Shown one piece after another: positions 8,829 to 47,265 of a stretch of 64,000 nt of DNA. The notes under the pieces were generated by a model. The model was not told the origin of the DNA. It saw only the letters and a program-made list of their open reading frames with translations, and made no database searches. Position numbers and translations under genes: made by a program. Location: positions 14,384,001-14,448,000 of the forward strand of contig NC_091291.1 in assembly GCF_032444005.1 (NCBI RefSeq). Direction: 5' to 3'. The stretch comes from Ranitomeya imitator (Eukaryota). How positions within the stretch are numbered: position 1 is the stretch's first letter; each line of letters begins with the position of its first letter.

Positions 8829-9119
8829 CATATACTCCGAGCTGGTAGCTTGTAGTGATAGGAGTAGAAGATTCTGGAGGTACTACAGACAGATCATAAA
8901 TCCCTTCATCAGTGTAGGAGACGTTGTTAATACTCAGGGATCCATTTTCATATAAATTACATCTTCCTACAAACGGATTCAAACAACGTAATGGAGACTG
9001 AATGTACACTGGTGCATTTTTATAATTCCATTGTACGTAGGATCCTACTGGAAAATTCACATTGAATAATACAAGTTTCCCAAGAGTTCCCGACACGTTG
9101 ATGACAGCGGCCACATTAC
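8829..9119 (-). CDS. Gene C N-terminal IgV-like exon (lacks canonical B/F cysteines)
   Basis: Acceptor ttcctatacag, donor gtaagt, 291 bp, phase 1/1. GNVAAVINVSGTLGK..VQW..GSLSINNVSYTDEGIY. Paralogous to the IgV exons of genes A and B. Confidence 0.9.
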
Positions 9120-11047: not shown

Positions 11048-11049
11048 AT

Positions 11050-11067
11050 TGGCGTCACGAACAGGAT
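11050..11067 (+). promoter_or_regulatory. Primer-binding site TGGCGTCACGAACAGGAT (tRNA-Ser(CGA)-like)
   Basis: 2 nt after the 5' LTR. The reverse complement ATCCTGTTCGTGACGCCA matches the 3' end of a vertebrate tRNA-Ser(CGA) as I recall it. Confidence 0.75.
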
Positions 11068-11517
11068 CTAGCCAGCCCGTATACCGGGTATTGTGTGCCG
11101 TGATTGGAGCCCAAAACTGTGAAAACTTGGATGAAAAATCTTGAAAATTGACCTTATTAAAGAAAAATCCATTCTCCATTGAAAACTATTGAAAGTGACT
11201 TTTCCCCATTGGTTATAATGGAGTAAAGATGGCCGCCATCCCCTGAGGTAATCACTTCATAACCGTTAGGCACGAGACTGTTAATTGAGCTACGCCATCA
11301 CCTGAGCCCCAGTCTAACTGAAAAACTTCAGAATCCGCCATTACAGAGCGCGGTGGGTGGGAGCAGCAGGGGGCGTGTCATTGTGGGCGGCACCAAGCTG
11401 AGCGCTCTGACATCAGAGCAAGGGGAAAATCGATCCTGCTGCACAGCGGAACGAATCTACACTATCCCGACGGAAGCGGAGGACCGGAAGGGTCCGGATT
11501 AACTAAGGGGGCACAGT

Positions 11518-12558
11518 ATGTCGCAGCACGGAGACGCCGCAGCACCCGGCAACGCTAATGCAGCTGAAAGACAGAGTGTCAATAGAGAGTCCGGCAGCGC
11601 AGCGGTGCAAGGAGTGGCGCCCATCATGCCGGTGCTGATGCCATATACCCCGGGTGGCCCATGGCTTCCAATGTATGAAGGTGAGCCTAATACCCTTGAC
11701 GATTTCAGAGAAAAGATGCTGGCCCATTTTGACATGTTCCCTGTGGGTGAAGTTCAGCGTGTTAGTCTCCTGATGATGCAGTTAAGTGGCCATGCTAAGC
11801 GAGAAGTCACAGCATGGGCAGCTGATCTAAAAGGCACTGTTGAACGCATATTTGCTGGATTAAAAGCTACATTTGAAACCACTGCCAGCAGCAAAGCTAA
11901 AGTACGATTCTTTAATTGCAAACAAAAAGTTAATGAGGGCGTGAGAGACTTTGCCTTAAACCTGCAGGAAGCCCTTAAATCACTTACACTGGCTGAACCC
12001 ATTTTTAACACCGGAGCGGATAAACTGCTAAGAGATCAATTTATTGAGGGACTCTACACCCCTTCTCACCGGGGGCATGTGAGCATGCTTGTTTTTAAGA
12101 ACCCTGAATTGACATTTGCTCAATTAAAGGAGAGCGCTATACGTCTCCAGCTGGCAGAGGCACCTCAGGATCAGGATCCTGCGCAACCCATGGCAGAGGC
12201 ACCTCAACAACAGGGAGTGCCAGTGACATCAGCTATGTCCGGGGCCATTGCTAAGCCCCTGGGGCCCAGTACTAATGAGGCTCTTCAACAAAAGCTTGAC
12301 TCTTTAACTGATGTTGTTGCTTCAATGGCTAAAACCATGCAGGAGATGAGAGGACCCAAGATGGAGTTGTCAAACCGTAGAGAAGGTGTTCCATGGATGA
12401 GACCCCGGAGATACCCGACATGGAGAGGACGACCTCGCGACCGCTACCAACCGGATGGACAGCCCATTTGCCGCCGTTGCCAGCAGCCAGGCCACTTTGC
12501 ACGAGATTGTGATTTAAACGGGAATCCCCTGGGAATGCGGGCCGCTTCGCAGGAATGA
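11518..12558 (+). CDS. gag: Gag, copy 1
   Basis: 346 aa; retrotransposon capsid-like region (LRDQFIEGL) and CCHC knuckle CRRCQQPGHFARDC. Confidence 0.92.
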   Translation: MSQHGDAAAPGNANAAERQSVNRESGSAAVQGVAPIMPVLMPYTPGGPWLPMYEGEPNTLDDFREKMLAHFDMFPVGEVQRVSLLMMQLSGHAKREVTAWAADLKGTVERIFAGLKATFETTASSKAKVRFFNCKQKVNEGVRDFALNLQEALKSLTLAEPIFNTGADKLLRDQFIEGLYTPSHRGHVSMLVFKNPELTFAQLKESAIRLQLAEAPQDQDPAQPMAEAPQQQGVPVTSAMSGAIAKPLGPSTNEALQQKLDSLTDVVASMAKTMQEMRGPKMELSNRREGVPWMRPRRYPTWRGRPRDRYQPDGQPICRRCQQPGHFARDCDLNGNPLGMRAASQE

Positions 12559-15500
12559 ACTTTCAAGGCCCAACACCCTGGCACGACAGGTACATCGGAG
12601 GACGACCCATTATCCCTATCGTGCTGGACGGAATGCCCCTCAACGCTTTGCTGGACACAGGTTCCCAGATTTCATCTATACCGTATATCCTTTATAAGAG
12701 GTACTGGGCTGATGCAGATATTGATAAAGGGCCCTCTGATGTTGAACTAGATATATGGGCCAGTAATGGTAAGTTGGTACCGAAACTAGGATTCAGGGAG
12801 ATGACCATAAAGATTGGTAAAGTAGAATTGAAGAAACAGGGTATAATTGTTGTTGATGTTGACCGGCGGAACTGTGAACCAACTGTATTGATAGGAATGA
12901 ATGTGTTAGAGAACTGCTTTTCCGAAGTCATTTCTGTCTTACAGCAAATTGCTGAAACTGCCCAATCCTGCCAGCAGAGAGTTCTCCGGAGGGAAATAAA
13001 AGTATTGATGTTAAGGCAACAGGTAGAAGTTGCAGGTGGAGAAATCGGCAGTGTGAGGGTAAGTGATCCAACATCTATTGTAATCCCACCAAAAACAGAA
13101 ATGCTGGTATGGTGTAGAGCAGCCATTGGTACTAAGGGACGAGATTATCAAGCCTTAATAGAACCAGTGTACACCGACAGCAGTCCCACTATACTCACAG
13201 CACGAGGGATAGTCGAGGTACACCGGGGACGAGTGCCGGTACGACTTTTGAACTGTGGAGAGGAAGAGGTCACTTTGCCAAGGTATGCTACAATGGCAAA
13301 GCTATATACTGTTGACAACAATGCCATCACAACCATTGAGCCCTTAGAACCAACCTGTCAGGTGGAAGGCAATGGCTCAGATGGAGAAATGGAGGATTGG
13401 TGCCAACAGCTACACGTGGGCATAAATTCAACACCTACCCATCAAAAACAAGGGGTGTATAGGCTAGTGACGGAATATGAACAAGTCTTCAGTAAACACC
13501 CATTGGACTTCGGACGGATAGAAGGGGTAGAACACACAATCCCCACCAGTGACCATCCCCCAATAAAAGAAAGATATAGACGCATACCGCCCGCTCACTA
13601 TCAATGTGCAAAAGATATGCTGAGGGAGATGAAACAGGCCGGGGTAATAAGAGACAGCTGTAGCCCCTGGGCGGCCCCTCTAGTGATTGTCAAAAAAAAG
13701 GACGGAACCATGAGAATGTGCGTAGACTACCGGAAGATTAATAACATCACCCATAAAGACGCCTACCCCTTGCCTAGGATAGAAGAGTCCTTAACTGCTT
13801 TGAAATCTGCTAATTATTTTTCCACCTTAGACTTAACAAGCGGGTATTGGCAAGTCCCTGTGGCTGAGCGAGATAAGGAAAAGACGGCATTCACCACACC
13901 AATGGGTCTATGTGAATTTAATCGCATGCCGTTCGGACTCTGCAACGCATCCGGTACCTTCCAGCGGCTGATGGAATGCTGCCTCGGACACAAGAACTTC
14001 GAGACCGTCCTCCTGTACCTAGATGATGTGATCGTCTACTCAAAGACTTACGAACAACACTTAATAGACCTGGCAGAAGTGTTCGAAGCCTTATCCAGGT
14101 ATGGCATGAAAGTCAAGCCATCCAAATGTCACCTTCTCAAGCCAAAGGTACAGTACCTGGGACACATCGTGAGTTCGGAGGGAGTAGCACCAGATCCCGA
14201 GAAAATAAGCGCCATAAGGGATTGGCCAAGACCTACCAGCGCAAAAGAGGTGAGACAATTCCTGGGATTGGTGGGTTACTATCGCAGATTTATAAAAGGA
14301 TTTACCAAGTTGGCAGCACCCTTGCAAGACACCTTGGTAGGGCAGACGAAGAAACCTTCAAACCGAAACCCTCCTTTTCAGTGGAACGACGAAAGGGAAG
14401 ACTCCTTTGAACAACTAAAGAAGGCACTAACCGGAGAAGAGGTTCTGGCGTACCCAGATTACCATCAACCTTTCATCCTCTACACCGATGCCAGTAATGT
14501 GGGACTAGGAGCGGTGCTGTCACAAAAGCAAGAAGGTCGGGAGAAAGTCATCGCCTTTGCAAGTAGAAAGCTCCGGCTTACTGAAAGAAATTCAGAAAAT
14601 TACAGCTCCTTCAAATTGGAACTACTGGCAGTAGTTTGGGCTGTGACTGAACGTTTCAAACACTATCTGGCCGCTGCAGAATTTATTGTCTATACTGACA
14701 ACAATCCGTTGACCCACCTGGACACAGCCAAATTAGGTGCGTTAGAACAGCGATGGATAGCCCGGTTATCTAATTACAACTTCAAGATCAAGTATCGAGC
14801 AGGTCGCAAGAATGGAAATGCCGATGCCCTATCCCGGATGCCACACTTGAGAGATGTAGAAGAAGAAATGGGGGAGCTTGAAGAAATTGAACTACCAGCC
14901 TTCCATCATCCCAAGGCAAAACATCATCAGTCAAGTACCTATCAGAAACAACAAGAGGTGAATTTTAATCCGTTAGCACACCATAGATGGGCTGACACCC
15001 AAGACAGCAATCCGGCTGTGAAGTTGGTGAAGGAACTGTTAACTGAGCAAAGTGCATATCCCGATGAGGATGCCCCAGAAGAGACGCATCAACTCTGGAA
15101 AGAGAGAGGCAAAATGTTCCTGTATCAAGGGAAGCTCTGTAGAAGGTACACCAATCCGAAAACACATGAATTGGTTTGGCAGATTATCGTGCCTAAACAA
15201 GATGTCAAGATGGTCCTCGAAGCTTACCATAATGGTGCTGGTCACTTCGGTTGGAAAAAGTTAGAAGTACTTCTAAGAGAAAGATTTTATTGGGTCGGGA
15301 TGAGAAAATCAATCGAACAGTGGTGCAGAAATTGTGGCCCGTGCAACCTCAGAAGAAACGATCAAAAGAACCAAAGAGCACCACTGCAGCCCATAATCAC
15401 CAAACAACCACTTGAACTTGTAGCCATGGACCACGTGAAGTTGACACCAAGCCGGTCTGGCTATGTCTATGCCTTGACCATCGTGGACCATTATTCACGC

Positions 15501-16691
15501 TTCTTGGTAGTAGTACCCGTAAAAGATCTGACAGCAAAAACAGCAGCCAAAGTGTTCCAAACGTACTTTTGTAGACCCCATGGATATCCGGAACAGGTTC
15601 TCACCGACCAAGGTACAGCCTTTGAATCAGAGATCTTCAGAGAATTCTGTAATATGTATGGTTGCAAAAAGATCCGGACGACGGCCTATCATCCACAAAC
15701 AAACGGCTTATGCGAGAAGATGAACCATATTGTAATAGACCTACTAAAGACTTTACCTGAGACAGAAAGGAATCAATGGCCAGAGAAATTGCCTGACTTG
15801 GTGGATCTGTATAATCATGTCCCGGTGAGTTCCACCAATTGCACCCCAGCTTACCTTATGCGTGCAAGACCCGGCCAATTACCAATCGATCTAGAAATGG
15901 GAATTCTGAAACCAGACGCAGAAGTTCAAGACTCCAATTGGGATATCATACGGCAAAAGCAGTATCGCCAAGTGCAAGAGAGTGTGGAAAGAAGCCTTCA
16001 GCAAACTAGAGAAAGACAAGAGCGAACTTTCAACCAGAATGCTCTAGCGACCCCATTAAGACCAGGTGACCAAGTGCTCAAGAGAAATCGTCGAACCAAT
16101 AAACTGGACAATCAGTGGGAAGCCGTACCCTACACAGTTTTACCAACAAGAGTGGATAATCCTAAAATGTGTCTCATTAGCAAAAACGGAGGCTTAACAT
16201 CTGTACTAGTGTCAAGAGACAATCTTAAATTATGTCCGGAAGCATTGAAAGAGCCAGAAGTTGTCCAGCCAGAACCAGAAGTTATTCAACCCATACAGGT
16301 TCAACCAGTAAAGGAAAAAGAAGAGGAAGTGTATCACACCTGTATAGGAGACTTTCCCAAAACCCTACTAACATACCATGGTGCAGTAGTGGTTCCCATG
16401 GTGGCCTTTTACCCAACACCGAACCCAATACCAGAAGTCCCAAGACAGGAAGAGGCTGACCCCGTACTACAGGAGGTTCCAGGCAAGGAAGAACAGATTC
16501 CTGATCAGAGTAATCCCATTCACGGTGGATTTGCCAACTCCATAGTCGTGGAATTATCTTTAGCAGAGCGGGCAGATACTACATCCGCTGTAGACAGTAG
16601 TACACCACATGAAGAGACACCGCTATTACGTAGATCACAGCGTAGTACCCAGGGTCAATTACTGGCCAGGTATGCAGATTACCAACTATAA
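12555..16691 (+). CDS. pol: Pol (protease-RT-RNase H-integrase), copy 1, -1 frame relative to gag
   Basis: LLDTGS, YLDD, LYTDAS, HHCC zinc finger, D-D-E (AMDH, TDQG, CEKMN); 1378 aa open. Confidence 0.96.
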   Translation: MNFQGPTPWHDRYIGGRPIIPIVLDGMPLNALLDTGSQISSIPYILYKRYWADADIDKGPSDVELDIWASNGKLVPKLGFREMTIKIGKVELKKQGIIVVDVDRRNCEPTVLIGMNVLENCFSEVISVLQQIAETAQSCQQRVLRREIKVLMLRQQVEVAGGEIGSVRVSDPTSIVIPPKTEMLVWCRAAIGTKGRDYQALIEPVYTDSSPTILTARGIVEVHRGRVPVRLLNCGEEEVTLPRYATMAKLYTVDNNAITTIEPLEPTCQVEGNGSDGEMEDWCQQLHVGINSTPTHQKQGVYRLVTEYEQVFSKHPLDFGRIEGVEHTIPTSDHPPIKERYRRIPPAHYQCAKDMLREMKQAGVIRDSCSPWAAPLVIVKKKDGTMRMCVDYRKINNITHKDAYPLPRIEESLTALKSANYFSTLDLTSGYWQVPVAERDKEKTAFTTPMGLCEFNRMPFGLCNASGTFQRLMECCLGHKNFETVLLYLDDVIVYSKTYEQHLIDLAEVFEALSRYGMKVKPSKCHLLKPKVQYLGHIVSSEGVAPDPEKISAIRDWPRPTSAKEVRQFLGLVGYYRRFIKGFTKLAAPLQDTLVGQTKKPSNRNPPFQWNDEREDSFEQLKKALTGEEVLAYPDYHQPFILYTDASNVGLGAVLSQKQEGREKVIAFASRKLRLTERNSENYSSFKLELLAVVWAVTERFKHYLAAAEFIVYTDNNPLTHLDTAKLGALEQRWIARLSNYNFKIKYRAGRKNGNADALSRMPHLRDVEEEMGELEEIELPAFHHPKAKHHQSSTYQKQQEVNFNPLAHHRWADTQDSNPAVKLVKELLTEQSAYPDEDAPEETHQLWKERGKMFLYQGKLCRRYTNPKTHELVWQIIVPKQDVKMVLEAYHNGAGHFGWKKLEVLLRERFYWVGMRKSIEQWCRNCGPCNLRRNDQKNQRAPLQPIITKQPLELVAMDHVKLTPSRSGYVYALTIVDHYSRFLVVVPVKDLTAKTAAKVFQTYFCRPHGYPEQVLTDQGTAFESEIFREFCNMYGCKKIRTTAYHPQTNGLCEKMNHIVIDLLKTLPETERNQWPEKLPDLVDLYNHVPVSSTNCTPAYLMRARPGQLPIDLEMGILKPDAEVQDSNWDIIRQKQYRQVQESVERSLQQTRERQERTFNQNALATPLRPGDQVLKRNRRTNKLDNQWEAVPYTVLPTRVDNPKMCLISKNGGLTSVLVSRDNLKLCPEALKEPEVVQPEPEVIQPIQVQPVKEKEEEVYHTCIGDFPKTLLTYHGAVVVPMVAFYPTPNPIPEVPRQEEADPVLQEVPGKEEQIPDQSNPIHGGFANSIVVELSLAERADTTSAVDSSTPHEETPLLRRSQRSTQGQLLARYADYQL

Positions 16692-17173
16692 AGCTCATAA
16701 TGTGAATTGTATATATGTTATGCCGTATATAGTTAAACAGAAAATGTAGTATAGTCATTGTTATCAGTCTGCAACGTTTAAGCCCAGTGCCTACAGAGAC
16801 TTGTCTGTAGGAACTTCTTGCATATTCTTGAACTTTTTATCAGCCCGGAGGCACTAAATCAAAGCTCCGGAAAGACTGCTTTTTGAACTTTGCTCCTCGC
16901 TCTTTTTGAACTTTCTTTAGACTTTATATTGATAACTCCGTTGGAAAAATGGAACTAAATTCCTGGACACAAAGTGCAGTGCCTTTCCTAGCACCTTCAA
17001 GGATAGAACTGTATTAATGGACGCTATTTGAAGTGACTTTGTACAGAACTATATTTTTGTTTCCTCGAGTGGTTTTTGTAACTTTTCATTTTTAAGACTC
17101 TGTACATATTAATTGTTATTTCAAAATGTTATTGTCCCACAGTCCCGGAGTACTGTTCTTAACTAAGGGGGAA

Positions 17174-18063
17174 TGTGGCACCCCTAGGGGTATTTGCCAC
17201 AAAAATAGTTACTGACACTAAACACAAATATTAAGATAGCAAAACTGCACTACCACCTCCGGCCAGAAGGGGGAGCTCCAGAGACTCCCCTTAATCCATT
17301 CTGGTCTGAGAGAAGAAATGGCTGTTGGGCTAAGGAGCTGATAGTGAGAGGTCATACAGTTGAATCTCTAACAGCCCTGTGACTGTTACCAGGCCTAAAT
17401 CACCGGCCTGAGGAGAAGAGGGATAGAGAAAAAGGACATTGTGAGAACCGGGTAGCATTAATCACTACCCAGAACAGGCGCAAAGACGGATACCGGATCC
17501 GTGGCTGTATTCATTACATATAATACAGCAACCGGAAAAAACGTGAGGTGATATCAGCTTCACTAGGGTCGGACGCAGCAACAGACACAGAGTTCAGTGG
17601 TACTCCTGGAGGGGGTAAGCCGATAAAAGGACTCGGGTTGCCCGTCGAACCAGGACCCGGAGGGGACAGATTGGGCCGGCAGCCAGTTCACATACAGCAG
17701 CAGGGCCACACAGATATTGCGTACAATAAGAGGCGAAGATCCCGGCAGGGTCAAAGTAACTCAGAGTTCCCATACAGACTCCGGTGACAGGACTGGTTGT
17801 AAATCCTTTTATGTTAAAGTAAACTGGTTAAACGTTTCAGTGCCTCAGCCTTTCATTTGGACAATAGCCATCTATCCAGGATCGGGATCGTCACCGCTGG
17901 GAGAACCTGCTGCTGATCAAGTAAGTGCCTGTCCCCTCATGATACCCCTTACACTGTGCATTGCCTGAGGCCACAGCACCGGGTCAAGCCACCCGTGACA
18001 CCCCCCTCAAGAGACAGACCCCATTGGTCCGGTGCTGGGTACCCCGGTCTCTTGGGCGTCACA
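17174..18063 (+). repeat. 3' LTR copy 1 (890 bp)
   Basis: Follows the PPT; about 11 substitutions and 2 indels versus the 5' LTR. Confidence 0.95.
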
Positions 18064-20073: not shown

Positions 20074-20125
20074 CTGAAAGTCCCAGCAGTAGAAACAAAG
20101 GTAGAACATTCTTGTAATAATCCAT
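20074..20125 (-). CDS. Gene C signal-peptide (leader) exon MDYYKNVLPLFLLLGLS(G)
   Basis: ATG in AAAATGG context, hydrophobic 17 codons +1 nt, donor TCAG|gtaaaa; phase 1 joins the 8829-9119 exon in frame. No other leader-like exon was seen nearer the IgV exon. Confidence 0.75.
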
Positions 20126-20276
20126 TTTTGCAGATTCCTGGGTGTCGGAGCTGTAGACTCGGTCTCCGTTTTCTCCCTTTTGCTCCAAGGTCTGTTTCCA
20201 GCTCAGACCTTTGTCCTTTGTTCTTCAGGTCTCCTGGTTCCTAAATGGTTGGTGACATCTGACTGTCACTGTTACA

Positions 20277-27918: not shown

Positions 27919-28533
27919 TTAATGTAAAAGGATATATGAAATATGGTGATTTCTCTATTGGATAATGAATGATATTAATATCGATGAAGGGGTAGAATCA
28001 TGCTATTATGTCCCCCACATATATACAGCGGAAGGGTGATGGAAATAAAATAATAAAGTGGATATAGAATCGAAGGCAAGGAAAAAGTTAAAAAAAACAT
28101 CAGTTATTACATGAACATCTCAGTAAATTTGTTTTGTTATGTTAAAATTGGGAGGTAAGAAAAAAACGGATGTTGGAACTACGGCAAAAAAAAAAAAAAG
28201 CCGCTTTATTATTCGGAGAATATGGGCTAGAACGACAACTCGTTATTCATTTCAGGGAAGCCGGGCTGCAGTGATACAGTATATCTATAACAGACCCATG
28301 TTCCACACTGAGCATAGTCAGTTTCTGAATTAGTCTCTTCCAATGTGGGAGAAGGTTCCTCTGGTTGAACATTTTTGGTTGAGATTCTTTGACTTTCCTC
28401 CCTTATACCGCCAGCAGAGGGCAGGTGGCACTGACGATACATGAGACGGAAGCTCATTAGAATAAATGTAGGACAGGAACTTTTAGAAGAATTCGAAGGT
28501 GGGATATTCTCCCCGATCCTTGGAGCCTCTGAG

Positions 28534-28579
28534 ATGAATCTCATATTACTACTGGGCGCTGTCTTATTCCTGGGCTTAG
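28534..28579 (+). CDS. Gene A signal-peptide exon MNLILLLGAVLFLGL(G)
   Basis: ATG, hydrophobic core, donor TTAG|gtgaga, 46 bp phase 1, followed by a 93-bp intron. Identical in gene B. Confidence 0.85.
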
Positions 28580-28672
28580 GTGAGATGGTTGTGCTGTCAG
28601 GGGTTATAGCTCCATGTTATTTTACCCTTTGTCACTCACTTTTTGTATATTGTCCTTGTGTTTTCCATACAG

Positions 28673-28966
28673 GTGATGTGGCCGCTGTCACCATCGTGAC
28701 GGGAACTCTTGGGAAACTTGTATTATTCAGTGCGAATGTTCCAGTAGGATCCTACGTACAATGGACTTATAACGGTCTACTAGTCTATGTTCAGTCTACA
28801 CCTGTTAATTGTTTAAATCAGTTCGCAGGAAGATGTAATTCGTATGAAAACGGATCCCTGAGTATTAACAACATCTCCTACACCGATGAAGGGATTTATG
28901 TTCTGAATATAATACCCCCGGATTCTTCTACTACTACCACTACAAACTACCAGCTCAGAGTATATG
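28673..28966 (+). CDS. Gene A IgV-like N-domain exon
   Basis: ttccatacag acceptor, gtaagg donor, 294 bp phase 1/1. V-set hallmarks (C-strand W, GSLxI, DEGIY) without the B/F Cys. Confidence 0.9.
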
Positions 28967-31037
28967 GTAAGGAGACGTCTGACTCTACATACAGTGCTAT
29001 AATACAATTTAACATTTGATGTTAAGTAAAAAAAATCATTTTAAAGATTATAAAATAATAGACAATTACATAATAGTTTATTATATTATAAAGTTCACTT
29101 TTCCAATATCTCTTAACATTTAGTTGCCCTTTTATCTTTGGGAGTGAAATTTCAGTTATGGAATTGATAATGAATCTGTCACGTTTTTTTTTAATGGGGG
29201 GGCATATTTTTTATGATAATTTAAGTAAAAAAAACACGAAGGAAATTGATAGGGTTGCCTCATCGGATATTAAATGAATAATTATTATTATCTATTATTA
29301 TAACGCCATTTATTTCATGTGAAAAGGGGAATTTGGTGTTGTTTTGCGCCTGCCTTTTCCATTCCACGGGGATGAACAACTCTTCCTTTTTGTGCCCAGT
29401 ATGTAAATCTGCCATATACATACATGACGCATCAGCACACTGCGACTAATCAGTACATGAACTTCACTATGGCAGCAAACGTTAAAAACATAAAGGTACT
29501 TGTACTTATTTAGCATTTTTTTAACAAAGATCCCAATAGCCATCTAACCACGTCAAGGTGTACCTAACTATGGATGGGCCCTAACCAGTAAACGTCCTAT
29601 TCCTCCATGTGCCAAACCAGCCTCGACTGAATGGGAAGTGGAAAGGAAACCAGGCATAGCTAACAATTAAAATGTTATTGTGGCACCCCTAGGGGTATTT
29701 GCCACAAAAATAGTTACTGACAGTAAGTACAAATACTAAAATAGCAAGACTGCACTACCACCTCCGGCCAGAAGGGGGAGCTCCAGAGACTCCCCTTGAT
29801 CCATTCTGGTCTGAGAGAAGAACTGGCAGTTGGGCTAAGGAGCTGAAAGTGAGAGGTCATACAGTTGAATCTCTAACAGCCCTGTGACTGTTACCAGGCC
29901 TAAATCACCGGCCTGAGGAGAAGAGGGATAGAGAAAAAGGACATTGTGAGAACCGGGTAGCATTAATCACTACCCAGAACAGGCGCAAAGACGGATACCG
30001 GATCCGTGGCTGTATTCATTATATATAATACAGCAACCGGAAAAACGTGAGGTGATATCAGCTTCACTAGGGCCGGACGCAGCAACAGACACAGAGTTCA
30101 GCGGTACTCCTGGAGGGGGTAAGCCGATAAAAGGACTCGGGTTGCCCGTCGAACCAGGACCCGGAGGGGACAGATTGGGCCGGCAGCCAGTTCACATACA
30201 GCAGCAGGGCCACACAGAAATTGCGCACAATAAGAGGCGAAGACCCCGGCAGGGTCAAAGTAACTCAGAGTTCCCATACAGACTCCGGTGACAGGACTGG
30301 TTGTAAATCCTTTTATGTTAAAGTAAACTGGTTAAACGTTTCAGTGCCTCAGTCTTTCATTTGGACAATAGCCATCTATCCAGGATCGAGATCGTCACCG
30401 CTGGGAGAACCTGCTGCTGATCAAGTAAGTGCCCGTCCCCTCATGATACCCCTTACACTGTGCATTGCCTGAGGCCACAGCACCGGGTCAAGCCACCCGT
30501 GACATCCCCCTCAAGAGACAGACTCCATTGGTCCGGTGCTGGGTATCCCGGTCTCCTGGGCGTCACAATTGGCGTCACGAACAGGATCTAGCCAGCCCGT
30601 ATACCGGGTATTGTGTGCCGTGATTGGAGCCCAAAACTGTGAAAACTGGGATGAAAAATCTTGAAAATTGACTTTATTAAAGAAAAATCCATTCCCCATT
30701 GAAAACTATTGAAAGTGACTTTTCCCCATTGGTTATAATGGAGTAAAGATGGCCGCCATCCCCTGAGGTAATCACTTCATAACCGTTAGGCACGAGACTG
30801 TTAATTGAGCTACGCCATCACCTGAGCCCCAGTCTAACTGAAAAACTTCAGAATCCGCCATTACAGAGCGCGGTGGGTGGGAGCAGCAGGGGGCGTGTCA
30901 TTGTGGGCGGCACCAAGCTGAGCGCTCTGACATCAGAGCAAGGGGAAAATCGATCCTGCTGCACAGCGGAACGAATCTACACTATCCCGACGGAAGCGGA
31001 GGACCGGAAGGGTCCGGATTAACTAAGGGGGCACAGT

Positions 31038-32078
31038 ATGTCGCAGCACGGAGACGCCGCAGCACTCGGCAACGCTAATGCAGCTGAAAGACAGAGTGTC
31101 AATAGAGAGTCCGGCAGCGCAGCGGTGCAAGGAGTGGCGCCCATCATGCCGGTGCTGATGCCATATACCCCGGGTGGCCCATGGCTTCCAATGTATGAAG
31201 GTGAGCCTAATACCCTTGACGATTTCAGAGAAAAGATGCTGGCCCATTTTGACATGTTCCCTGTGGGTGAAGTTCAGCGTGTTAGTCTCCTGATGATGCA
31301 GTTAAGTGGCCATGCTAAGCGAGAAGTCACAGCATGGGCAGCTGATCTAAAAGGCACTGTTGAACGCATATTTGCTGGATTAAAAGCTACATTTGAAACC
31401 ACGGCCAGCAGCAAAGCTAAAATACGATTCTTTAGTTGCAAACAAAAAGCTAATGAGGGCGTGAGAGACTTTGCCTTAAACCTGCAGGAAGCCCTTAAAT
31501 CACTTACACTGGCTGAACCCATTTTTAACACCGGAGCGGATAAACTGCTAAGAGATCAATTTATTGAGGGACTCTACACCCCTTCTCACCGGGGGCATGT
31601 GAGCATGCTTGTTTTTAAGAACCCTGAATTGACATTTGCCCAATTAAAGGAGAGCGCTATACGTCTCCAGCTGGCAGAGGCACCTCAGGATCAGGATCCT
31701 GCGCAACCCATGGCAGAGGCACCTCAACAACAGGGAGTGCCAGTGACATCAGCTATGTCTGGGGCCATTGCTAAGCCCCTGGGGCCCAGTACTAATGAGG
31801 CTCTTCAACAAAAGCTTGACTCTTTAGCTGATGTTGTTGCTTCAATGGCTAAAACCATGCAGGAGATGAGAGGACACAAGATGGAGTTGGCAAACTGTAG
31901 AGAGGATGTTCCATGGATGAGACTCCGGAGATACCCGACATGGAGAGGACGACCCCGCGACCGCTACCAACCGGATGGACAGCCCATTTGCCGCCGTTGC
32001 CAGCAGCCAGGCCACTTTGCACGAGATTGTGATTTAAACGGGAATCCCCTGGGAATGCGGGCCGCTTCGCAGGAATGA
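31038..32078 (+). CDS. gag: Gag, copy 2
   Basis: 346 aa, 10 aa differences from copy 1, CCHC intact. Confidence 0.92.
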   Translation: MSQHGDAAALGNANAAERQSVNRESGSAAVQGVAPIMPVLMPYTPGGPWLPMYEGEPNTLDDFREKMLAHFDMFPVGEVQRVSLLMMQLSGHAKREVTAWAADLKGTVERIFAGLKATFETTASSKAKIRFFSCKQKANEGVRDFALNLQEALKSLTLAEPIFNTGADKLLRDQFIEGLYTPSHRGHVSMLVFKNPELTFAQLKESAIRLQLAEAPQDQDPAQPMAEAPQQQGVPVTSAMSGAIAKPLGPSTNEALQQKLDSLADVVASMAKTMQEMRGHKMELANCREDVPWMRLRRYPTWRGRPRDRYQPDGQPICRRCQQPGHFARDCDLNGNPLGMRAASQE

Positions 32079-35000
32079 ACTTTCAAGGCCCAACACCCTG
32101 GCACAACAGGTACATCGGAGGACGACCCATTATCCCTATCGTGCTGGACGGAATTCCCCTCAACGCTTTGCTGGGCACAGGTTCCCAGATTTCATCTATA
32201 CCGTATATCCTTTATAAGAGGTACTGGGCTGATGCAGATATTGATAAAGGGCCCTCTGATGTTGAACTAGATATATGGGCCAGTAATGGTAAGTTGGTAC
32301 CGAAACTAGGATTCAGGGAGATGACCATAAAGATTGGTAAAGTAGAATTGAAGAAACAGGGTATAATTGTTGTTGATGTTGACCGACGGAACTGTGAACC
32401 AACTGTATTGATAGGAATGAATGTGTTAGAGAACTGCTTTTCCGAAGTCATTTCTGTCTTACAGCAAATTGCTGAAACTGCCCAATCCTGCCAGCAGAGA
32501 GTTCTCCGGAGGGAAATAAAAGTATTGATGTTAAGACAACAGGTAGAAGTTGCAGGTGGAGAAATCGGCAGTGTGAGGGTAAGTGATCCAACATCTATTG
32601 TAATCCCACCAAAAACAGAAATGCTGGTATGGTGTAGAGCAGCCATTGGTACTAAGGGACGAGATTATCAAGCCTTAATAGAACCAGTGTACACCGACAG
32701 CAGGCCCACTATACTCACAGCACGAGGGATAGTCGAGGTACACCGGGGACGAGTGCCGGTACGACTTTTGAACTGTGGAGAGGAAGAGGTCACTTTGCCA
32801 AGGTATGCTACAATGGCAAAGCTATATACTGTTGACAACAATGCCATCACAACCATTGAGCCCTTAGAACCAACCTGTCAGGTGGAAGGCAATGGCTCAG
32901 ATGGAGAAATGGAGGATTGGTGCCAACAGCTACACGTGGGCATAAATTCAACACCTACCCATCAAAAACAAGGGGTGTATAGGCTAGTGACGGAATATGA
33001 ACAAGTCTTCAGTAAACACCCATTGGACTTCGGACGGATAGAAGGGGTAGAACACACAATCCCCACAGGTGACCATCCCCCAATAAAAGAAAGATATAGA
33101 CCCATACCGCCCGCTCACTATCAATGTGCAAAAGATATGCTGAGGGAAATGAAACAGGCCGGGGTAATAAGAGACAGCTGTAGCCCCTGGGCGGCCCCTC
33201 TAGTGATTGTCAAAAAAAAGGACGGAACCATGAGAATGTGCGTAGACTACCGGAAGATTAATAACATCACCCATAAAGACGCCTACCCCTTGCCTAGGAT
33301 AGAAGAGTCCTTAACTGCTTTGAAATCTGCTAATTATTTTTCCACCTTAGACTTAACAAGCGGGTATTGGCAAGTCCCTGTGGCTGAGAGAGATAAGGAA
33401 AAGACGGCATTCACCACACCAATGGGTCTATGTGAATTTAATCGCATGCCGTTCGGACTCTGCAACGCATCCGGTACCTTCCAGCGGCTGATGGAATGCT
33501 GCCTCGGACACAAGAACTTCGAGACCGTCCTCCTGTACCTAGATGATGTGATCGTCTACTCAAAGACTTACGAACAACACTTAGTAGACCTGGCAGAAGT
33601 GTTCGAAGCCTTATCCAGGTATGGCATGAAAGTCAAGCCATCCAAATGTCACCTTCTCAAGCCAAAGGTACAGTACCTGGGACACATCGTGAGTTCGGAG
33701 GGAGTAGCACCAGATCCCGAGAAAATAAGCGCCATAAGGGATTGGCCAAGACCTACCAGCGCAAAAGAAGTGAGACAATTCCTGGGATTGGTGGGTTACT
33801 ATCGCAGATTTATAAAAGGATTTACCAAGTTGGCAGCACCCTTGCAAGACACCTTGGTAGGGCAGACGAAGAAACCTTCAAACCGAAACCCTCCTTTTCA
33901 GTGGAACGACGAAAGGGAAGACTCCTTTGAACAACTAAAGAAGGCACTAACCGGACAAGAGGTTCTGGCATACCCAGATTACCATAAACCTTTCATCCTC
34001 TACACCGATGCCAGTAATGTGGGACTAGGAGCGGTGCTGTCACAAAAGCAAGAAGGTCGGGAGAAAGTCATCGCCTTTGCAAGTAGAAAGCTCCGGCCTA
34101 CTGAAAGAAATTCAGAAAATTACAGCTCCTTCAAATTGGAACTACTGGCAGTAGTTTGGGCTGTGACGGAGCGTTTCAAACACTATCTGGCCGCTGCAGA
34201 ATTTATTGTCTATACTGACAACAATCCGTTGACCCACCTGGACACAGCCAAATTAGGTGCGTTAGAACAGCGATGGATAGCCCGGTTATCTAATTACAAC
34301 TTCATAATCAAGTATCGAGCAGGTCGCAAGAATGGAAATGCCGATGCCCTATCCCGGATGCCACACTTGAGAGATGTAGAAGAAGAAATGGGGGAGCTTG
34401 AAGAAATTGAACTACCAGCCTTCCATCATCCCAAGGCAAAACATCATCAGTCAAGTACCTATCAGAAACAACAAGAGGTGAATTTAAATCCGTTAGCACA
34501 CCATAGATGGGCTGACACCCAAGACAGCAATCCGGCTGTGAAGTTGGTGAAGGAACTGTTAACTGAGCAAAGTGCATATCCCGATGAGGATGCCCCAGAA
34601 GAGACGCATCAACTCTGGAAAGAGAGAGGCAAAATGTTCCTGTATCAAGGGAAGCTCTGTAGAAGGTACACCAATCCGAAAACACATGAATTGGTTTGGC
34701 AGATTATCGTGCCTAAACAAGATGTCAAGATGGTCCTCGAAGCTTACCATAATGGTGCTGGTCACTTCGGTTGGAAAAAGTTAGAAGTACTTCTAAGAGA
34801 AAGATTTTATTGGGTCGGGATGAGAAAATCAATCGAACAGTGGTGCAGAAATTGTGGCCCGTGCAACCTCAGAAGAAACGATCAAAAGAACCAAAGAGCA
34901 CCCCTGCAGCCCATAATCACCAAACAACCACTTGAACTTGTAGCCATGGACCACGTGAAGTTGACACCAAGCCGGTCTGGCTATGTCTATGCCTTGACCA

Positions 35001-36211
35001 TCGTGGACCATTATTCACGCTTCTTGGTAGTAGTACCCGTAAAAGATCTGACAGCAAAAACAGCAGCCAAAGCGTTCCAAACGTACTTTTGTAGACCCCA
35101 TGGATATCCGGAACAGGTTCTCACCGACCAAGGTACAGCCTTTGAATCAGAGATCTTCAGAGAATTCTGTAATATGTATGGTTGCAAAAAGATCCGGACG
35201 ACGGCCTATCATCCACAAACAAACGGCTTATGCGAGAAGATGAACCATATTGTAATAGAACTACTAAAGACTTTACCTGAGGCAGAAAGGAATCAATGGC
35301 CAGAGAAATTGCCTGACTTGGTGGATCTGTATAATCATGTCCCGGTGAGTTCCACCAATTGCACCCCAGCTTACCTTATGCGTGCAAGACCCGGCCAATT
35401 ACCAATCGATCTAGAAATGGGAATTCTGAAACCAGACGCAGAAGTTCAAGACTCCAATTGGGATATCATACGGCAAAAGCAGTATCGCCAAGTGCAAGAG
35501 AGTGTGGAAAGAAGCCTTCAGCAAACTAGAGAAAGACAAGAGCGAACTTTCAACCAGAATGCTCTAGCGACCCCATTAAGACCGGGTGACCAAGTGCTCA
35601 AGAGAAATCGTCGAACCAATAAACTGGACAATCAGTGGGAAGCCGTACCCTACACAGTTTTACCAACAAGAGTGGATAATCCTAAAATGTGTCTCATTAG
35701 CAAAAACGGAGGCTTAACATCTGTACTAGTGTCAAGAGACAATCTTAAATTATGTCCGGAAGCATTGAAAGAGCCAGACGTTGTCCAGCCAGAACCAGAA
35801 GTTATTCAACCCATACAGGTTCAACCAGTAAAGGAAAAAGAAGAGGAAGTGTATCACACCTGTATAGGAGACTTTCCCAAAACCCTACTAACATACCATG
35901 GTGCAGTAGTGGTTCCCATGGTGGCCTTTTACCCAACACCGAACCCAATACCAGAAGTCCCAAGACAGGAAGAGGCTGACCCCGTACTACAGGAGGTTCC
36001 AGGCCAGGAAGAACAGATTCCTGGTCAGAGTAATCCCATTCACGGTGGACTTGCCAACTCCATAGTCGTGGAATTATCTTTAGCAGAGCGGGCAGATACT
36101 ACATCCGCAGTAGACAGTAGTACACCACATGAAGAGACACCGCTATTACGTAGATCACAGCGTAGTACCCAGGGTCAATTACCGGCCAGGTATGCAGATT
36201 ACCAACTATAA
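32075..36211 (+). CDS. pol: Pol, copy 2 (protease catalytic Asp mutated to Gly)
   Basis: 1378 aa open; LLGTGS in place of LLDTGS; RT/RH/IN motifs intact. Confidence 0.95.
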   Translation: MNFQGPTPWHNRYIGGRPIIPIVLDGIPLNALLGTGSQISSIPYILYKRYWADADIDKGPSDVELDIWASNGKLVPKLGFREMTIKIGKVELKKQGIIVVDVDRRNCEPTVLIGMNVLENCFSEVISVLQQIAETAQSCQQRVLRREIKVLMLRQQVEVAGGEIGSVRVSDPTSIVIPPKTEMLVWCRAAIGTKGRDYQALIEPVYTDSRPTILTARGIVEVHRGRVPVRLLNCGEEEVTLPRYATMAKLYTVDNNAITTIEPLEPTCQVEGNGSDGEMEDWCQQLHVGINSTPTHQKQGVYRLVTEYEQVFSKHPLDFGRIEGVEHTIPTGDHPPIKERYRPIPPAHYQCAKDMLREMKQAGVIRDSCSPWAAPLVIVKKKDGTMRMCVDYRKINNITHKDAYPLPRIEESLTALKSANYFSTLDLTSGYWQVPVAERDKEKTAFTTPMGLCEFNRMPFGLCNASGTFQRLMECCLGHKNFETVLLYLDDVIVYSKTYEQHLVDLAEVFEALSRYGMKVKPSKCHLLKPKVQYLGHIVSSEGVAPDPEKISAIRDWPRPTSAKEVRQFLGLVGYYRRFIKGFTKLAAPLQDTLVGQTKKPSNRNPPFQWNDEREDSFEQLKKALTGQEVLAYPDYHKPFILYTDASNVGLGAVLSQKQEGREKVIAFASRKLRPTERNSENYSSFKLELLAVVWAVTERFKHYLAAAEFIVYTDNNPLTHLDTAKLGALEQRWIARLSNYNFIIKYRAGRKNGNADALSRMPHLRDVEEEMGELEEIELPAFHHPKAKHHQSSTYQKQQEVNLNPLAHHRWADTQDSNPAVKLVKELLTEQSAYPDEDAPEETHQLWKERGKMFLYQGKLCRRYTNPKTHELVWQIIVPKQDVKMVLEAYHNGAGHFGWKKLEVLLRERFYWVGMRKSIEQWCRNCGPCNLRRNDQKNQRAPLQPIITKQPLELVAMDHVKLTPSRSGYVYALTIVDHYSRFLVVVPVKDLTAKTAAKAFQTYFCRPHGYPEQVLTDQGTAFESEIFREFCNMYGCKKIRTTAYHPQTNGLCEKMNHIVIELLKTLPEAERNQWPEKLPDLVDLYNHVPVSSTNCTPAYLMRARPGQLPIDLEMGILKPDAEVQDSNWDIIRQKQYRQVQESVERSLQQTRERQERTFNQNALATPLRPGDQVLKRNRRTNKLDNQWEAVPYTVLPTRVDNPKMCLISKNGGLTSVLVSRDNLKLCPEALKEPDVVQPEPEVIQPIQVQPVKEKEEEVYHTCIGDFPKTLLTYHGAVVVPMVAFYPTPNPIPEVPRQEEADPVLQEVPGQEEQIPGQSNPIHGGLANSIVVELSLAERADTTSAVDSSTPHEETPLLRRSQRSTQGQLPARYADYQL

Positions 36212-37749
36212 AGCTCATAATGTGAATTGTATATATGTTATGCCGTATATAGTTAAACAGAAAATGTAGTATAGTCATTGTTATCAGTCTGCAACGTTTA
36301 AGCCCAGTGCCTACAGAGACTTGTCTGTATGAACTTATTGCATATTCTTGAACTTTTTATCAGCCCGGAGGCACTAAATCAAAGCTCCGGAAAGACTGCT
36401 TTTTGAACTTTGCTCCTCGCTCTTTTTGAACTTTCTTTAGACTTTATATTGATAACTCCGTTGGAAAAATGGAACTAAATTACTGGACACTAAGTACAGT
36501 GCCTTTCCTAATACCTTCAAGGATAGAACTGTATTAATGGATGCTATTTGAAGTGACTTTTTACAGAACTCTATTTTTGTTTCCTTGAGTGGTTTTTGTA
36601 ACTTTTCATTTTTAAGACTCTGTACATATTAATTGTTATTTCAAAATGTTATTGTCCCACAGTCCCGGAGTACTGTTCTTAACTAAGGGGGAATGTGGCA
36701 CCCCTAGGGGTATTTGCCACAAAAATAGTTACTGACAGTAAGTACAAATACTAAAATAGCAAGACTGCACTACCACCTCCGGCCAGAAGGGGGAGCTCCA
36801 GAGACTCCCCTTGATCCATTCTGGTCTGAGAGAAGAAATGGCAGTTGGGCCAAGGAGCTGAAAGTGAGAGGTCATACAGTTGAATCTCTAACAGCCCTGT
36901 GACTGTTACCAGGCCTAAATCACCGGCCTGAGGAGAAGAGGGATAGAGAAAAAGGACATTGTGAGAACCGGGTAGCATTAATCACTACCCAGAACAGGCG
37001 CAAAGACGGATACCGGATCCGTGGCTGTATTCATTATATATAATACAGCAACCGGAAAAACGTGAGGTGATATCAGCTTCACTAGGGCCGGACGCAGCAA
37101 CAGACACAGAGTTCAGCGGTACTCCCAGAGGGGGTAAACCGATAAAAGGACTCGGGTTGCCCGTCGAACCAGGACCCGGAGGGGACAGATTGGGCCGGCA
37201 GCCAGTTCACATACAGCAGCAGGGCCACACAGATATTGCGTACAATAAGAGGCGAAGACCCCGGCAGGGTCAAAGTAACTCAGAGTTCCCATACAGACTC
37301 CGGTGACAGGACTGGTTGTAAATCCTTTTATGTTAAAGTAAACTGGTTAAACGTTTCAGTGCCTCAGTCTTTCATTTGGACAATAGCCATCTATCCAGGA
37401 TCGAGATCGTCACCGCTGGGAGAACCTGCTGCTGATCAAGTAAGTGCCTGTCCCCTCATGATACCCCTTACACTGTGCATTGCCTGAGGCCACAGCACCG
37501 GGTCAAGCCACCCGTGACATCCCCCTCAAGAGACAGACTCCATTGGTCCGGTGCTGGGTATCCCGGTCTCCTGGGCGTCACATTATGTAGGAAAGATTGG
37601 TGGATAAAGGTGCTGGGCCCTGGAGGAGGTCACAACCCCTACCCCATATGTCTTACACAAAAAAAACTATAGTATTAAATTATTGTACAGGTGCACAAAT
37701 ATGCTATCTGGCCAATATACAGACGTATGCAATTCATCAGCGCACTGTA

Positions 37750-39148: not shown

Positions 39149-39424
39149 GTGCCCTCAGTGCTCCTGTTCTCCGCTCCATTACCAGTACTCCTCTTATTAA
39201 TGGCACCAATGTGACCCTCCAGTGTGATGCCGGGAGCCAAAATGTGACATCTTACACTTTCTACCGAAATGGTCAGAAGATTATCTGCTCTGGACGTGTG
39301 ATCTGCAGAGGATCATTCCTGGACTTCGCCCCGATATTTGAGAGTGACGGCGGATCCTACACCTGCACCATTGAAAACCCTGTCAGCTCCCACACCAGCA
39401 ACTCCCTGAGTCTGACTGTGTACG
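39149..39424 (+). CDS. Gene A IgC exon 1
   Basis: ttgctctttttcag acceptor, gtaaga donor, 276 bp phase 1/1; VTLQC...DGGSYTC. Confidence 0.9.
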
Positions 39425-40560
39425 GTAAGAATATAGAGAATGGGAAATAAATTAAAACTTGTAACCATTTAATCCATTTTTACTCCAAATGCCCTCAGTA
39501 GTGGCGGTGCTCACCTCTAAATAGATTTGCTTGTTGGCATGACTTGAAGCTCATGGGCCCCAGTTCTAAAGCTCCAACATGACATCCAACTTGAAGTTCA
39601 TGGTCCCCAGGGCAAAAACTCCAATTATTGCAAGCCTTTCATACTAATGGTCTTTTGATATAGGCTAAAGGGACCTTTAGGACTCCCTAGGCTCCAGGGA
39701 AGGGGTGCAATTGCAACCCCTGCACCTATTATAGTTACGCCCCTTCTTTGGATGGTTCGTGCAGCAAAAAAATACATCTTTCCAGATGTGGGTTGAAGGA
39801 GATTGCAGCTACAATTCTGACCAGTTTTTTGGGAGTACTTTATGTTAAATTTTTTTTAGGCAGATGTTGGCGAAAGCAAAAAGTTGCAAAATTGCTGTGA
39901 AAAACAGCTATCAACAATTTTTTTCGCAACAGTTAGGCACAGAAGGAACAATGAATTCCCCCCATAGTTATCAACAAGTATAAATATTAATAATAATGAA
40001 TAGTTCAATAATGTCAAAAACTTCTTGATCGTCAGGATCTCACTATTTAACGACCTAATACATTCACTACGCAGTCTTTATCTTCACTAATCCAATTAGG
40101 ACCTGACATATAGGCCACCTTTGTCATTATCCTGCTAAATGATGATCCATGTAAGGGTCTGTACTCAGTCATAAATATATTGCCTTTACGGATAGACACA
40201 GATACCAACATACAGCCATATAAACTTTACTACGTGTGGGAGCAGCACAACACGCACGGGACGTTTTAAAAAATTTGCTCATCTTCTAACCATGCCCACA
40301 TTATGCTGTCGCCTTTTTTCTGGCCTGAAATGTTCATCTTCGCATCTCCTAAATCTGCTTATTAGAAGCCAAAGAAGACGAAGCATTTTAGCAATGTTGC
40401 TTGTTGGTCATAGTTTGGCAGATATGGACATGAGGGGGAATCCAATGACCCGTAGCCAGAATACCAAATTCTGAGAATGTATGTATTCGGTATATTATAT
40501 TGTGATCATTCTAAGCTTTTACAATCCAACCTTCATGTTTCTTTGTGTTTTGTATCTCAG

Positions 40561-40842
40561 TCCAGGTCTCTAATGTCGCGGTGACAAGTAATGTATCGGG
40601 ACTTGTGTGGCCCGGATTAGATTCAGTGTCTCTACGATGTTCGGCTGATGGAACAAATGTCAGCTACTCGTGGAGCCTACAAGGGGCAGCGATATCCGGA
40701 GGAGGCCGATATCTCCTCACCGATAATAACGCCACGCTCACTATCAGCCCTGTCTCCACTGATGACAGCGGATCCTTCATATGTACGGCTACAAACATAA
40801 TAAACAGCCTGAACAGCAGGAACGTGACGTTCAACCTGGCCT
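40561..40842 (+). CDS. Gene A IgC exon 2
   Basis: tgttttgtatctcag acceptor, gtaagt donor, 282 bp phase 1/1. Confidence 0.9.
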
Positions 40843-41463
40843 GTAAGTAGCACATCATGTCTGTCATTATAGTCTGTAATTTACGTAGGAAGGAATACAA
40901 GAGCACAGAAAGCAGCTCAACAACAGGTTTTTTTTTCACAAAATGGCAATGTGCTTGCTGGTGTCCACTGTATTTAAAGATATAACAGTTTGAGCTAAAC
41001 AGAGGTAGTTGATTGTTTCATGAGCTGATACTTTTTCCTTTTTGCTGGCAGTCTCAACCACATCCTCCGCATTACCTACATACAGATTTGCACTCACCTC
41101 TTTCATAGAAACCCAACGTGTTAGTTAGACACGACTTATTCGTCATGAATCCGTATTCCAATGCCGTAGTCCAATGGATCCTCCATAATCCACATTGATG
41201 TCCCACGATGAACCCCATCTAAATGCTAGCATATGAGCCCCATTCAGAGCATGGGGCTGTCACACCAGCACACACTGCCAGATCGTGCAGTGCAATGTCT
41301 GCGACCAGCGGTGACGTTAGTAAGGTTACCGCCTGCCACAGTCAGTGCTGCAGGGCAATTGAACACTTGTTGCTAAACTCCCCACAGATTACAGCTGATG
41401 TGGTAGGATAACGATTGATTTTTCAGGGTATTTACTCATATTCATCTTTGGTTTTGTTCACAG

Positions 41464-41757
41464 CTCCGGTCTCGGCAGTGACGTTGACCAGTAACACATC
41501 GGCGGTGCTCTGGGCAGGAGAGGACTCGGCGTCTTTCCATTGCTCAGCTCAGGGTTCAGCCATCACCTTCTCCTGGAGACTGAATGGAACCCAAGTGTTA
41601 TCAAAGCCTCCATATTCCATAACTCAGAGTGATTCTCCTCCCAACTCTAATCTCACCATCAGGCCCGTCTCCAAGAACGACACTGGACCATTCACCTGTA
41701 CGGCATCCAACAGAGCTAATAGTATAACTAGTGGAGCAGCCAACCTCAATATCAACT
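41464..41757 (+). CDS. Gene A IgC exon 3
   Basis: tttttgttcacag acceptor, gtgagt donor, 294 bp phase 1/1; SFHC..FSW..DTGPFTC. Confidence 0.9.
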
Positions 41758-42250: not shown

Positions 42251-42487
42251 GGTCTCCCGATGGAAACATTAGCTGTACTGGCCAACCCATAGGACAGATC
42301 GTACAGCTCGGCTGCTCCTGGCCCGGAGGAAAACCTGCAGCCGATGTCACCATGATATTTGATGATGTGCGAAATACAAGCACTAATGAAGTGTACAGAA
42401 ATGTGAGTTCTATCAGTAATATCCACGGGAGCAATCTCACCTGTAATGGTAACCAGAGGAGAACCTCAAGCTGCCTGGTTACATTTG
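42251..42487 (+). CDS. Gene A IgC exon 4 (short 4-Cys domain, WSPDG..C..QLGCSWPGGKP.., VSIG10L-like)
   Basis: tacatcccag acceptor, gtaaga donor, 237 bp phase 1/1. Paralog at 62456-62695 is one codon longer. Confidence 0.85.
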
Positions 42488-44477: not shown

Positions 44478-44810
44478 AGCCTCCTGTGTCTACGATCCAT
44501 AAAAATGATACAGTTACTCCAGGTCTAGTCGGAGGTGCAGTCAACCTAACAGTGGATCTACAAGCTGGAGTCCGGTCGCGGGCCACTGCCCTGTCAGCTC
44601 AGGCCCTACCCGCTTCGTTCTCCTGGTACCAAGGCAATAGTGCTACTGCTATTCAGACTGGCGGTAAATTCAGGGTGGACTCCACTCTCTATGCATCCAC
44701 TCTCAACATTGATAAGTTGACCGAGGTCGAATCGGGAGATTATAAATGTGTAGCCGAAAACTTTATTGGAAAAACAACCTTCCTTTTCAATGTTATAGTG
44801 TCCCAAAGCG
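44478..44810 (+). CDS. Gene A membrane-proximal Ig exon
   Basis: cccttttccatcag acceptor, gtaagt donor, 333 bp phase 1/1; FSWY..STLNI..ESGDYKC. Confidence 0.85.
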
Positions 44811-47072: not shown

Positions 47073-47183
47073 GTGGTGGTTCTAGTAGTGGACTGGACGG
47101 TGGGGCGATCGCCGGGATTGTTATAGGAGTACTTGCTGGTGTTGCATTAATAGGAGTCATCGCATTCTTCATATTGAAGAAAC
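47073..47183 (+). CDS. Gene A transmembrane exon GGGSSSGLDGGAIAGIVIGVLAGVALIGVIAFFILKK
   Basis: ctttattttctag acceptor, gtatgt donor, 111 bp phase 1/1; about 23 hydrophobic residues followed by KK. Missed by the ORF track. Confidence 0.9.
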
Positions 47184-47265
47184 GTATGTACCCGTTACGT
47201 TGTGTATAGCTGTATCTACTGTATTAACGTTCAAATAGAATTTTTTCGTTGTTTCCCGTTTTTAA

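Follow-up and report, generated by a model that had tools for sequence, protein, structure and literature searches.

A mosaic N-domain exon in two CEACAM-type receptor genes of the poison frog Ranitomeya imitator

In cattle, GENECONV analysis of the CEACAM32 and CEACAM1 paralogs placed conversion in the leader exon and in introns flanking the N exon and found none within the N exon, a pattern ascribed to selection that hinders conversion in the mature, ligand-binding domain (Hanske et al. 2020, PMC7042247). In Xenopus, parts of the ceacam N exons lack synonymous differences, which was ascribed to recent conversion. Replacements there gather in the CC′C″FG strands, and some of the conversions are restricted to the exon, with introns that cannot be aligned (Zimmermann and Kammerer 2016, PMC5112662). 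The same Xenopus study (PMC5112662) cites a human case, in which CEACAM1 sequence has replaced part of CEACAM3 exon 2.

Here we describe a mosaic between two receptor paralogs, A and B, of Ranitomeya imitator, in a window of 64,000 nucleotides that also holds a third copy, C (positions below are those of the window). The A/B mosaic is a new instance of known CEACAM-family behaviour, not a new mechanism. It resembles the bovine CEACAM32 case in that conversion of leader and intron spares coding sequence of the binding domain. In the frog, however, the part that appears unconverted is confined to 166 bp in the middle of the N exon and both exon ends are homogenised, and the frog A/B tracts come from comparison of the three copies in the window, whereas the bovine conversion was called by GENECONV. 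With Xenopus the locus shares an anuran CEACAM cluster, and the exon-limited exchange described there resembles the relation of C to A and B. The Xenopus work emphasised N-domain likeness between inhibitory and activating partners, whereas the A/B tract spans promoter, leader and intron, omits the core of the binding face and leaves an island with full synonymous divergence. The human CEACAM3 event, as far as that citation describes it, is likewise a partial N-exon conversion between CEACAM paralogs, but one that restores similarity of the binding domain.

A full-text search pairing CEACAM with Ranitomeya returned no study of the Ranitomeya CEACAM cluster. On the reading favoured below, the locus offers a small, clean example of an immune-receptor family that shares regulatory and signal-peptide modules by conversion while its binding faces stay different, and it extends the pattern known from Xenopus and cattle to dendrobatid poison frogs. 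It also illustrates that an exon "more divergent than its flanks" can reflect homogenised flanks rather than an accelerated exon, and that synonymous sites and more distant flanks discriminate between the two.

Three CEACAM-type genes and their N domain

The window contains three paralogs of an immunoglobulin-superfamily receptor as its sole genes. Their exons are as follows.

28534-28579, forward strand: leader exon of gene A, from the ATG to the donor, phase 1, read from the sequence
28673-28966, forward strand: N-domain (IgV) exon of gene A, 294 bp, without a B-F disulfide (Pfam V-set, E=2.5e-7; AlphaFold2 pLDDT 89)
39149-39424, forward strand: exon 3 of gene A, first IgC2-type domain (splice sites, loose ends of RNA contigs, Pfam Ig_2)
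40561-40842, forward strand: exon 4 of gene A, an Ig exon
41464-41757 (exon 5), 42251-42487 and 44478-44810, forward strand: further Ig exons of gene A
near 47090-47194, forward strand: transmembrane (TM) exon of gene A
near 52733-52804, forward strand: last coding exon of gene A, reading QELTHGNKSVYHTV
57945-57990, forward strand: leader exon of gene B, identical to that of A (gap-free alignment, offset 29411; matches P0143)
58084-58377, forward strand: N-domain exon of gene B, its protein identical to the N domain of P0143
up to about 62695, forward strand: further Ig exons of gene B
20077-20128, reverse strand: leader exon of gene C, encoding a different leader, MDYYKNVLPLFLLLGLS (loose end of a C-type RNA contig; matches P0144)
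8829-9119, reverse strand: N-domain exon of gene C, 291 bp and thus one codon shorter, identical to the N domain of P0144
2848-2573 and 453-172 (exon 4), reverse strand: further exons of gene C

The bounds of the gene A N exon are correct at 28673-28966, with AG before and GT after the exon and phase 1. RNA contigs from runs X3, X4 and X7 splice out intron 1 (28580-28672) exactly, joining 28579 to 28673, and RNA contigs also join 28966 to exon 3 of gene A, with loose ends past 28966 that read into exon 3. The contigs begin at 28466-28475, which marks the transcript start. Exons 3-7 of gene A all have lengths that are multiples of three, AG/GT splice sites and phase 1, and the exons that follow the N exon, each searched on its own, are assigned by Pfam to Ig_2, Ig_3 or I-set. 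Gene A therefore has the CEACAM layout of a leader, an N exon, a chain of phase-1 IgC2-type exons and a TM exon. Transcription of A, B and C is seen in RNA contigs, and C-type transcripts use the gene's own leader. The introns flanking the gene C N exon do not align with their A and B counterparts.

Gene A is the only one whose tail falls within the window, which stops short of the 3′ ends of B and C. The cytoplasmic tail of gene A (48905-49096 and 52733-52804) ends in a Tyr, encoded before the last intron, followed by QELTHGNKSVYHTV; the YxxL motif of this tail is interrupted by an intron, as it is in the ITAM-like tails of Xenopus, and the SVYHTV of the tail also matches the ITIM consensus. 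The window further holds two 7.9-kb copies of an LTR element (10165-18063 and 29679-37582), which are 98.6% identical and have LTRs of about 885 bp each. One copy lies inside the 11-kb intron 1 of gene C and the other in intron 2 of gene A, 0.7 kb past the N exon, where A transcripts splice across it.

The N domain bears the CEACAM hallmark of a missing canonical B-F disulfide: its B strand (VLFSA) has no Cys, and Leu77 occupies the F-strand Cys position of the D-x-G-x-Y-x-C motif. Compared with PDB sequences, its best 23 matches are all N domains of CEACAM1, 3, 5, 6 or 7, at weak scores (E 0.003-0.03). The nearest database proteins are frog models to which NCBI has given the automatic names CEACAM1-like, CEACAM5-like or PSG-like, and A, B and C are themselves already present as predicted RefSeq models ("CEACAM1-like"). 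Two of the R. imitator RefSeq proteins, P0143 and P0144, derive from another assembly; over their first 125 residues, leader and N domain, they match B and C exactly, and over their later exons they agree with the window at 97-100% identity.

An AlphaFold2 model of the N domain, built from 26 frog N domains, is confident (pLDDT 89) and places the strands at residues 5-10 (A), 16-18 (B), 27-32 (C), 35-39 (C′), 54-56 (D), 62-64 (E), 73-80 (F) and 88-96 (G). Foldseek matches the model to the disulfide-less IgV domains of CD84, 2B4, CD58 and CEACAM1/5/6 (TM 0.73-0.85), with CD84, CD58 and 2B4 (0.76-0.84) level with or slightly above the CEACAM N domains (0.73-0.76).

A pair of cysteines in the C″-D region, C46 and C54 (28810-28836), is near-invariant in frog N domains: C46 is found in at least 90% and C54 in 12 of 12 sequences of a first alignment; in a larger alignment of 26 sequences, at least 90% have C54. 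To our knowledge such a pair is absent from mammalian CEACAM N domains, and it may form a non-canonical disulfide that substitutes for the absent B-F bond.

Near-identical tracts and a divergent island

Aligned over the 5′ part of the genes and around exon 4, A and B alternate between near-identical and diverged DNA.

28336-28773, forward strand: 5′ near-identical A/B tract, 5 differences in 438 bp against a background of 18.4%
28774-28939, forward strand: divergent island of 166 bp with 25 A/B differences, codons 34-89, which run from the C-C′ turn to where the G strand begins
28940-29019, forward strand: 3′ identical A/B tract of 80 bp without a difference, made up of 27 nt at the end of the N exon and 53 nt at the start of intron 2
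40490-40969 (A) and 60186-60665 (B), forward strand: another near-identical A/B tract, of 480 bp with 6 differences, enclosing exon 4

A sequence-only reading of this DNA had described the N exon as far more divergent between A and B than its own flanks, with about 26 differences, about 20 of them nonsynonymous and 6 synonymous, and 14 changed residues. Its counts are borne out almost to the base. The two N exons differ at 26 of 294 bases (one at exon position 16, the other 25 within positions 102-267) and the N domains at 14 of 97 residues, with 19 nonsynonymous and 7 synonymous changes by the Nei-Gojobori method. The 165 nt before the leader donor are identical as described, positions 28391-28595 being free of any A/B difference; the 93-bp intron 1 has the 3 differences reported, and identity past the IgV donor covers the first 53 nt of intron 2. 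The loss of an N-I-S sequon in B, also described earlier, is caused by N66Y.

The differences within the exon are clustered beyond chance: finding 25 of 26 in 166 of 294 bp has P ~4e-5 by a scan test, and the concentration of 25 of 30 differences in 166 bp of the 684-bp near-identical tract was reached in none of 50,000 simulations.

What the earlier framing missed is the state of the DNA farther out. Upstream of 28336 and downstream of 29019, A and B differ at 83 of 450 aligned bases (18.4%), and the divergence of the island, 25/166 (15%), is not different from this outer background (P=0.40). An island that matches the background is no anomaly; what stands out is the near-identity of its flanks, rather than any unusual divergence of the exon. 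The 5′ tract starts about 125 bp before the transcript start and runs through the 5′UTR, the leader exon and intron 1 to nucleotide 101 of the IgV exon. Under an 18% background, the probability of 5 or fewer differences in 438 bp is ~1e-31, that of no difference in the 80 bp of the 3′ tract is ~8e-8, and the near-identity of intron 1 on its own has P ~1e-5. Because near-identity of an intron is outside the reach of protein-level constraint, we read these stretches as tracts of gene conversion or recombination.

The second tract, around exon 4, is bordered by 17-25% A/B divergence. The DNA preceding exon 3 is about 5% diverged between A and B, and exons 5-6 are 14-20% diverged. With a second tract at exon 4 and diverged exons 5-6, the whole A/B pair is a patchwork. 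The IgC2 domain of exon 4 is near-identical in all three genes (A-B 99.3%, A-C 97.5%; C at 172-453), and between A and B the near-identity takes in flanking intron DNA. Exon 5 of A (41464-41757) and exon 5 of B (61583-61876) are only 80% identical, and their best matches are different Ig domains of an R. variabilis CEACAM5-like protein (residues 403-502 and 687-786), which suggests that A and B retained different members of an older domain array.

Origin of the island

Silent sites bear directly on the age of the island. Its synonymous divergence (pS 0.174, 7 changes in 40.3 sites; pN 0.141) is 15-fold higher than the divergence of the neighbouring introns and upstream DNA, which differ at 4 of 344 positions (1.2%; Fisher P=2e-5). 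As silent changes in the island stand at background level, the replacements did not accumulate after homogenisation, and the island is older than its flanks.

We assign a probability of roughly 65% to a history in which interlocus gene conversion homogenised the promoter, leader, intron 1 and exon ends of A and B, but not the core of the binding face. In this history A and B would be old tandem paralogs of a frog CEACAM-type receptor whose non-coding DNA had diverged by about 18%, until recent interlocus conversion overwrote about 0.68 kb at their 5′ ends and left them with a common promoter, 5′UTR, signal peptide, intron 1 and both ends of the N exon. The central 166 bp, which encode the C′, C″, D, E and F strands and the FG loop, would have escaped overwriting, or converted versions of them may not have been kept, so that silent and replacement sites of this patch would both retain the old divergence. 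Inside the patch, the D-E-F core would be under purifying selection and the exposed C′C″/FG side free to vary, which would give the appearance of clustering on one face.

Selection for distinct ligand specificities may plausibly keep the patch from being homogenised. Going further, we suggest only tentatively that selection blocks homogenisation of the face, that A and B are co-regulated with deliberately different specificities and that the N exon is positively selected after each exon-limited conversion. If this holds, a pair with the same promoter and signal peptide and divergent specificities would be the frog counterpart of mammalian receptor/decoy arms races.

The earlier reading had attributed the pattern to diversifying selection and/or short conversion tracts, of which the conversion component is upheld by the tract probabilities and the selective one is not. 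That pathogens drove face replacements to fixation in place, after A and B had become identical, is a very unlikely account. The replacements do lie on the C-C′ turn, C′, the C′-C″ loop, F (N78) and FG/G, similar curves in Xenopus were read in this way by their authors, and the N exon has the highest dN/dS among the gene's exons (0.86-2.2 against 0.25-0.87). Against it stand the 7 synonymous changes at the island's 40 sites beside ~1% divergence in adjoining non-coding DNA. The ratios themselves, pairwise counts on the three window copies, also speak against it: A/B dN/dS, at 0.86 over the exon and 0.79 over the island, does not depart from neutrality in either, pN/pS on the C′C″/FG segments is 1.17 and not significantly above 1, and the ratio on A's own branch is about 0.5. 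Exon-wide dN/dS between B and C is 2.2, again without significance (P=0.18), so that none of these pairwise counts, for the A/B exon, island or face segments or for the B/C exon, is significantly above 1.

How the changes are distributed within the island is informative. Silent changes are evenly spread, and replacements avoid codons 52-77 (D, E, EF and F core), where 1 of 26 codons is changed against 12 of 30 in the rest of the island (P=0.0014); pN/pS of the D-E-F core is 0.14. This pattern is one of purifying selection on a structural core with little constraint on the exposed side, and some diversifying selection is also compatible with it.

With C as third sequence, 18 island sites are unique to A, 5 to B and 15 to C, and 2 differ three ways. 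The imbalance between A and B (P=0.011) recurs at the silent A/B differences, 7 of which are A-unique and none B-unique (P=0.016), in a polarisation on only three DNA sequences. The mixture of B states (APVY, SP, RC, LS) and one A state (INN) that had been noticed in gene C reappears in our comparison. The B states at residues 35, 36, 45, 78 and 88 are common to C and to R. variabilis or Anomaloglossus homologs, and the A residues G34, L35, L36, N45, N78 and T88 occur in none of the four close dendrobatoid homologs; with its specific states unmatched, the A patch is the odd one out. Since simple retention predicts about equal shares for A and B, this lopsidedness demands an extra step: either the B patch was partly reset by C-like copies, or the A patch came from another source. 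Under retention, the B patch would have been held near the family consensus through exchange with C-like genes.

The other source would be an unsampled CEACAM paralog or a divergent allele, from which a short tract of at least 166 bp and under about 250 bp was copied into A after the whole 0.68 kb had been homogenised. That A is the odd one out, with all 7 of 7 synonymous differences on its side and B sharing its states with C and the other dendrobatoids, is what such an import would produce, and mosaic A-like alleles in other individuals indicate that short exchanges occur here. However, contigs of one DNA run yield three island versions only, those of A, B and C, each at depth 8-11; the A-type depth is not doubled, and a fourth version at least 82% alike was not found in that run, although contigs cannot prove absence, and import accordingly keeps some weight. 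The A island residues also fail to appear in any of the four homologs, and a match between island divergence and A/B background would have to be coincidence. We therefore prefer retention, on the grounds that the island equals the A/B background, that three versions are present at single-copy depth and that no relative carries the A states; import we regard as unlikely but worth keeping in view.

An assembly artefact, in which collapsed or chimeric joining of paralogs made the near-identical flanks or misplaced the island, is hardly credible. It could draw on the A/B identical stretches of 83-85 bp on either side of the island, at which short-read contigs break, so that the island is not phased with the outer flanks. 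But in independent DNA contigs each of the versions A, B and C is recovered at the depth of a single copy, one RNA contig joins the exact A-type island to A exon 3 and another the B-type island to B exon 3, and RefSeq proteins of another assembly have N domains identical to those of B and C. The pattern would moreover be unchanged even if the two islands were swapped.

A recent conversion from C to B was considered as a cause of the island and rejected: B-C divergence is 10-13% throughout the exon, which gives no sign of a recent tract confined to the island.

The exon ends show a separate pattern. In codons 1-33 and 90-97 (28675-28773 and 28942-28965), none of the A, B and C pairs has a synonymous difference, and over these 41 codons C differs from A and B by 11-12 replacements and no silent change. 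That silent differences are missing here, though the C introns cannot be aligned, argues for an exchange limited to the exon. The absence of silent changes among 11-12 is marginal (P ~0.04-0.05 by our own estimate, with a synonymous share of 0.24). Even so, it points to positive selection following exon-limited conversion more strongly than the A/B island does, and counts in favour of diversifying selection as a region where replacements stand out while synonymous divergence is nil. In C, a new N-V-S sequon is present at residues 7-9.

Letters of B or C type turn up at 28870, 28906-28909 and 28920 in A-like transcripts from other individuals, and the A allele of the DNA run has paralog-type letters at 28766, 28873 and 28884. 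Continuing short exchanges fit these letters; shared polymorphism may also account for them, and chimeric contigs are a less likely source. The A-like contigs concerned may be mosaic alleles or a fourth copy that varies in number.

Replacements on the predicted binding face

The sequence-only reading had placed the changes on the predicted CC′C″/FG face, and the secondary structure of the model, together with alignment to CEACAM N domains, supports that placement. Using the DSSP string of the model and this alignment, we locate the replaced residues at 5 (A strand), 34-36 (C-C′ turn and C′ strand), 42-45 (C′-C″ loop), 51, 66 (E-F loop, the sequon), 78 (F strand) and 87-89 (FG loop and start of G). 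The clustering on CC′C″/FG is explained equally well by purifying selection on the D-E-F core.

In CEACAM1, V39, Q89 and N97-E99 are interface residues of the GFCC′ face. By HMMER alignments to CEACAM5 and CEACAM6, N78 aligns with what we take to be CEACAM1 Q89, and T86-T88 with what are presumably N97-E99; L36 presumably falls on V39 when the conserved Trp is taken as anchor. Crystal structures of the V39A, N97A and E99A mutants are among the fold matches of the frog N-domain model.
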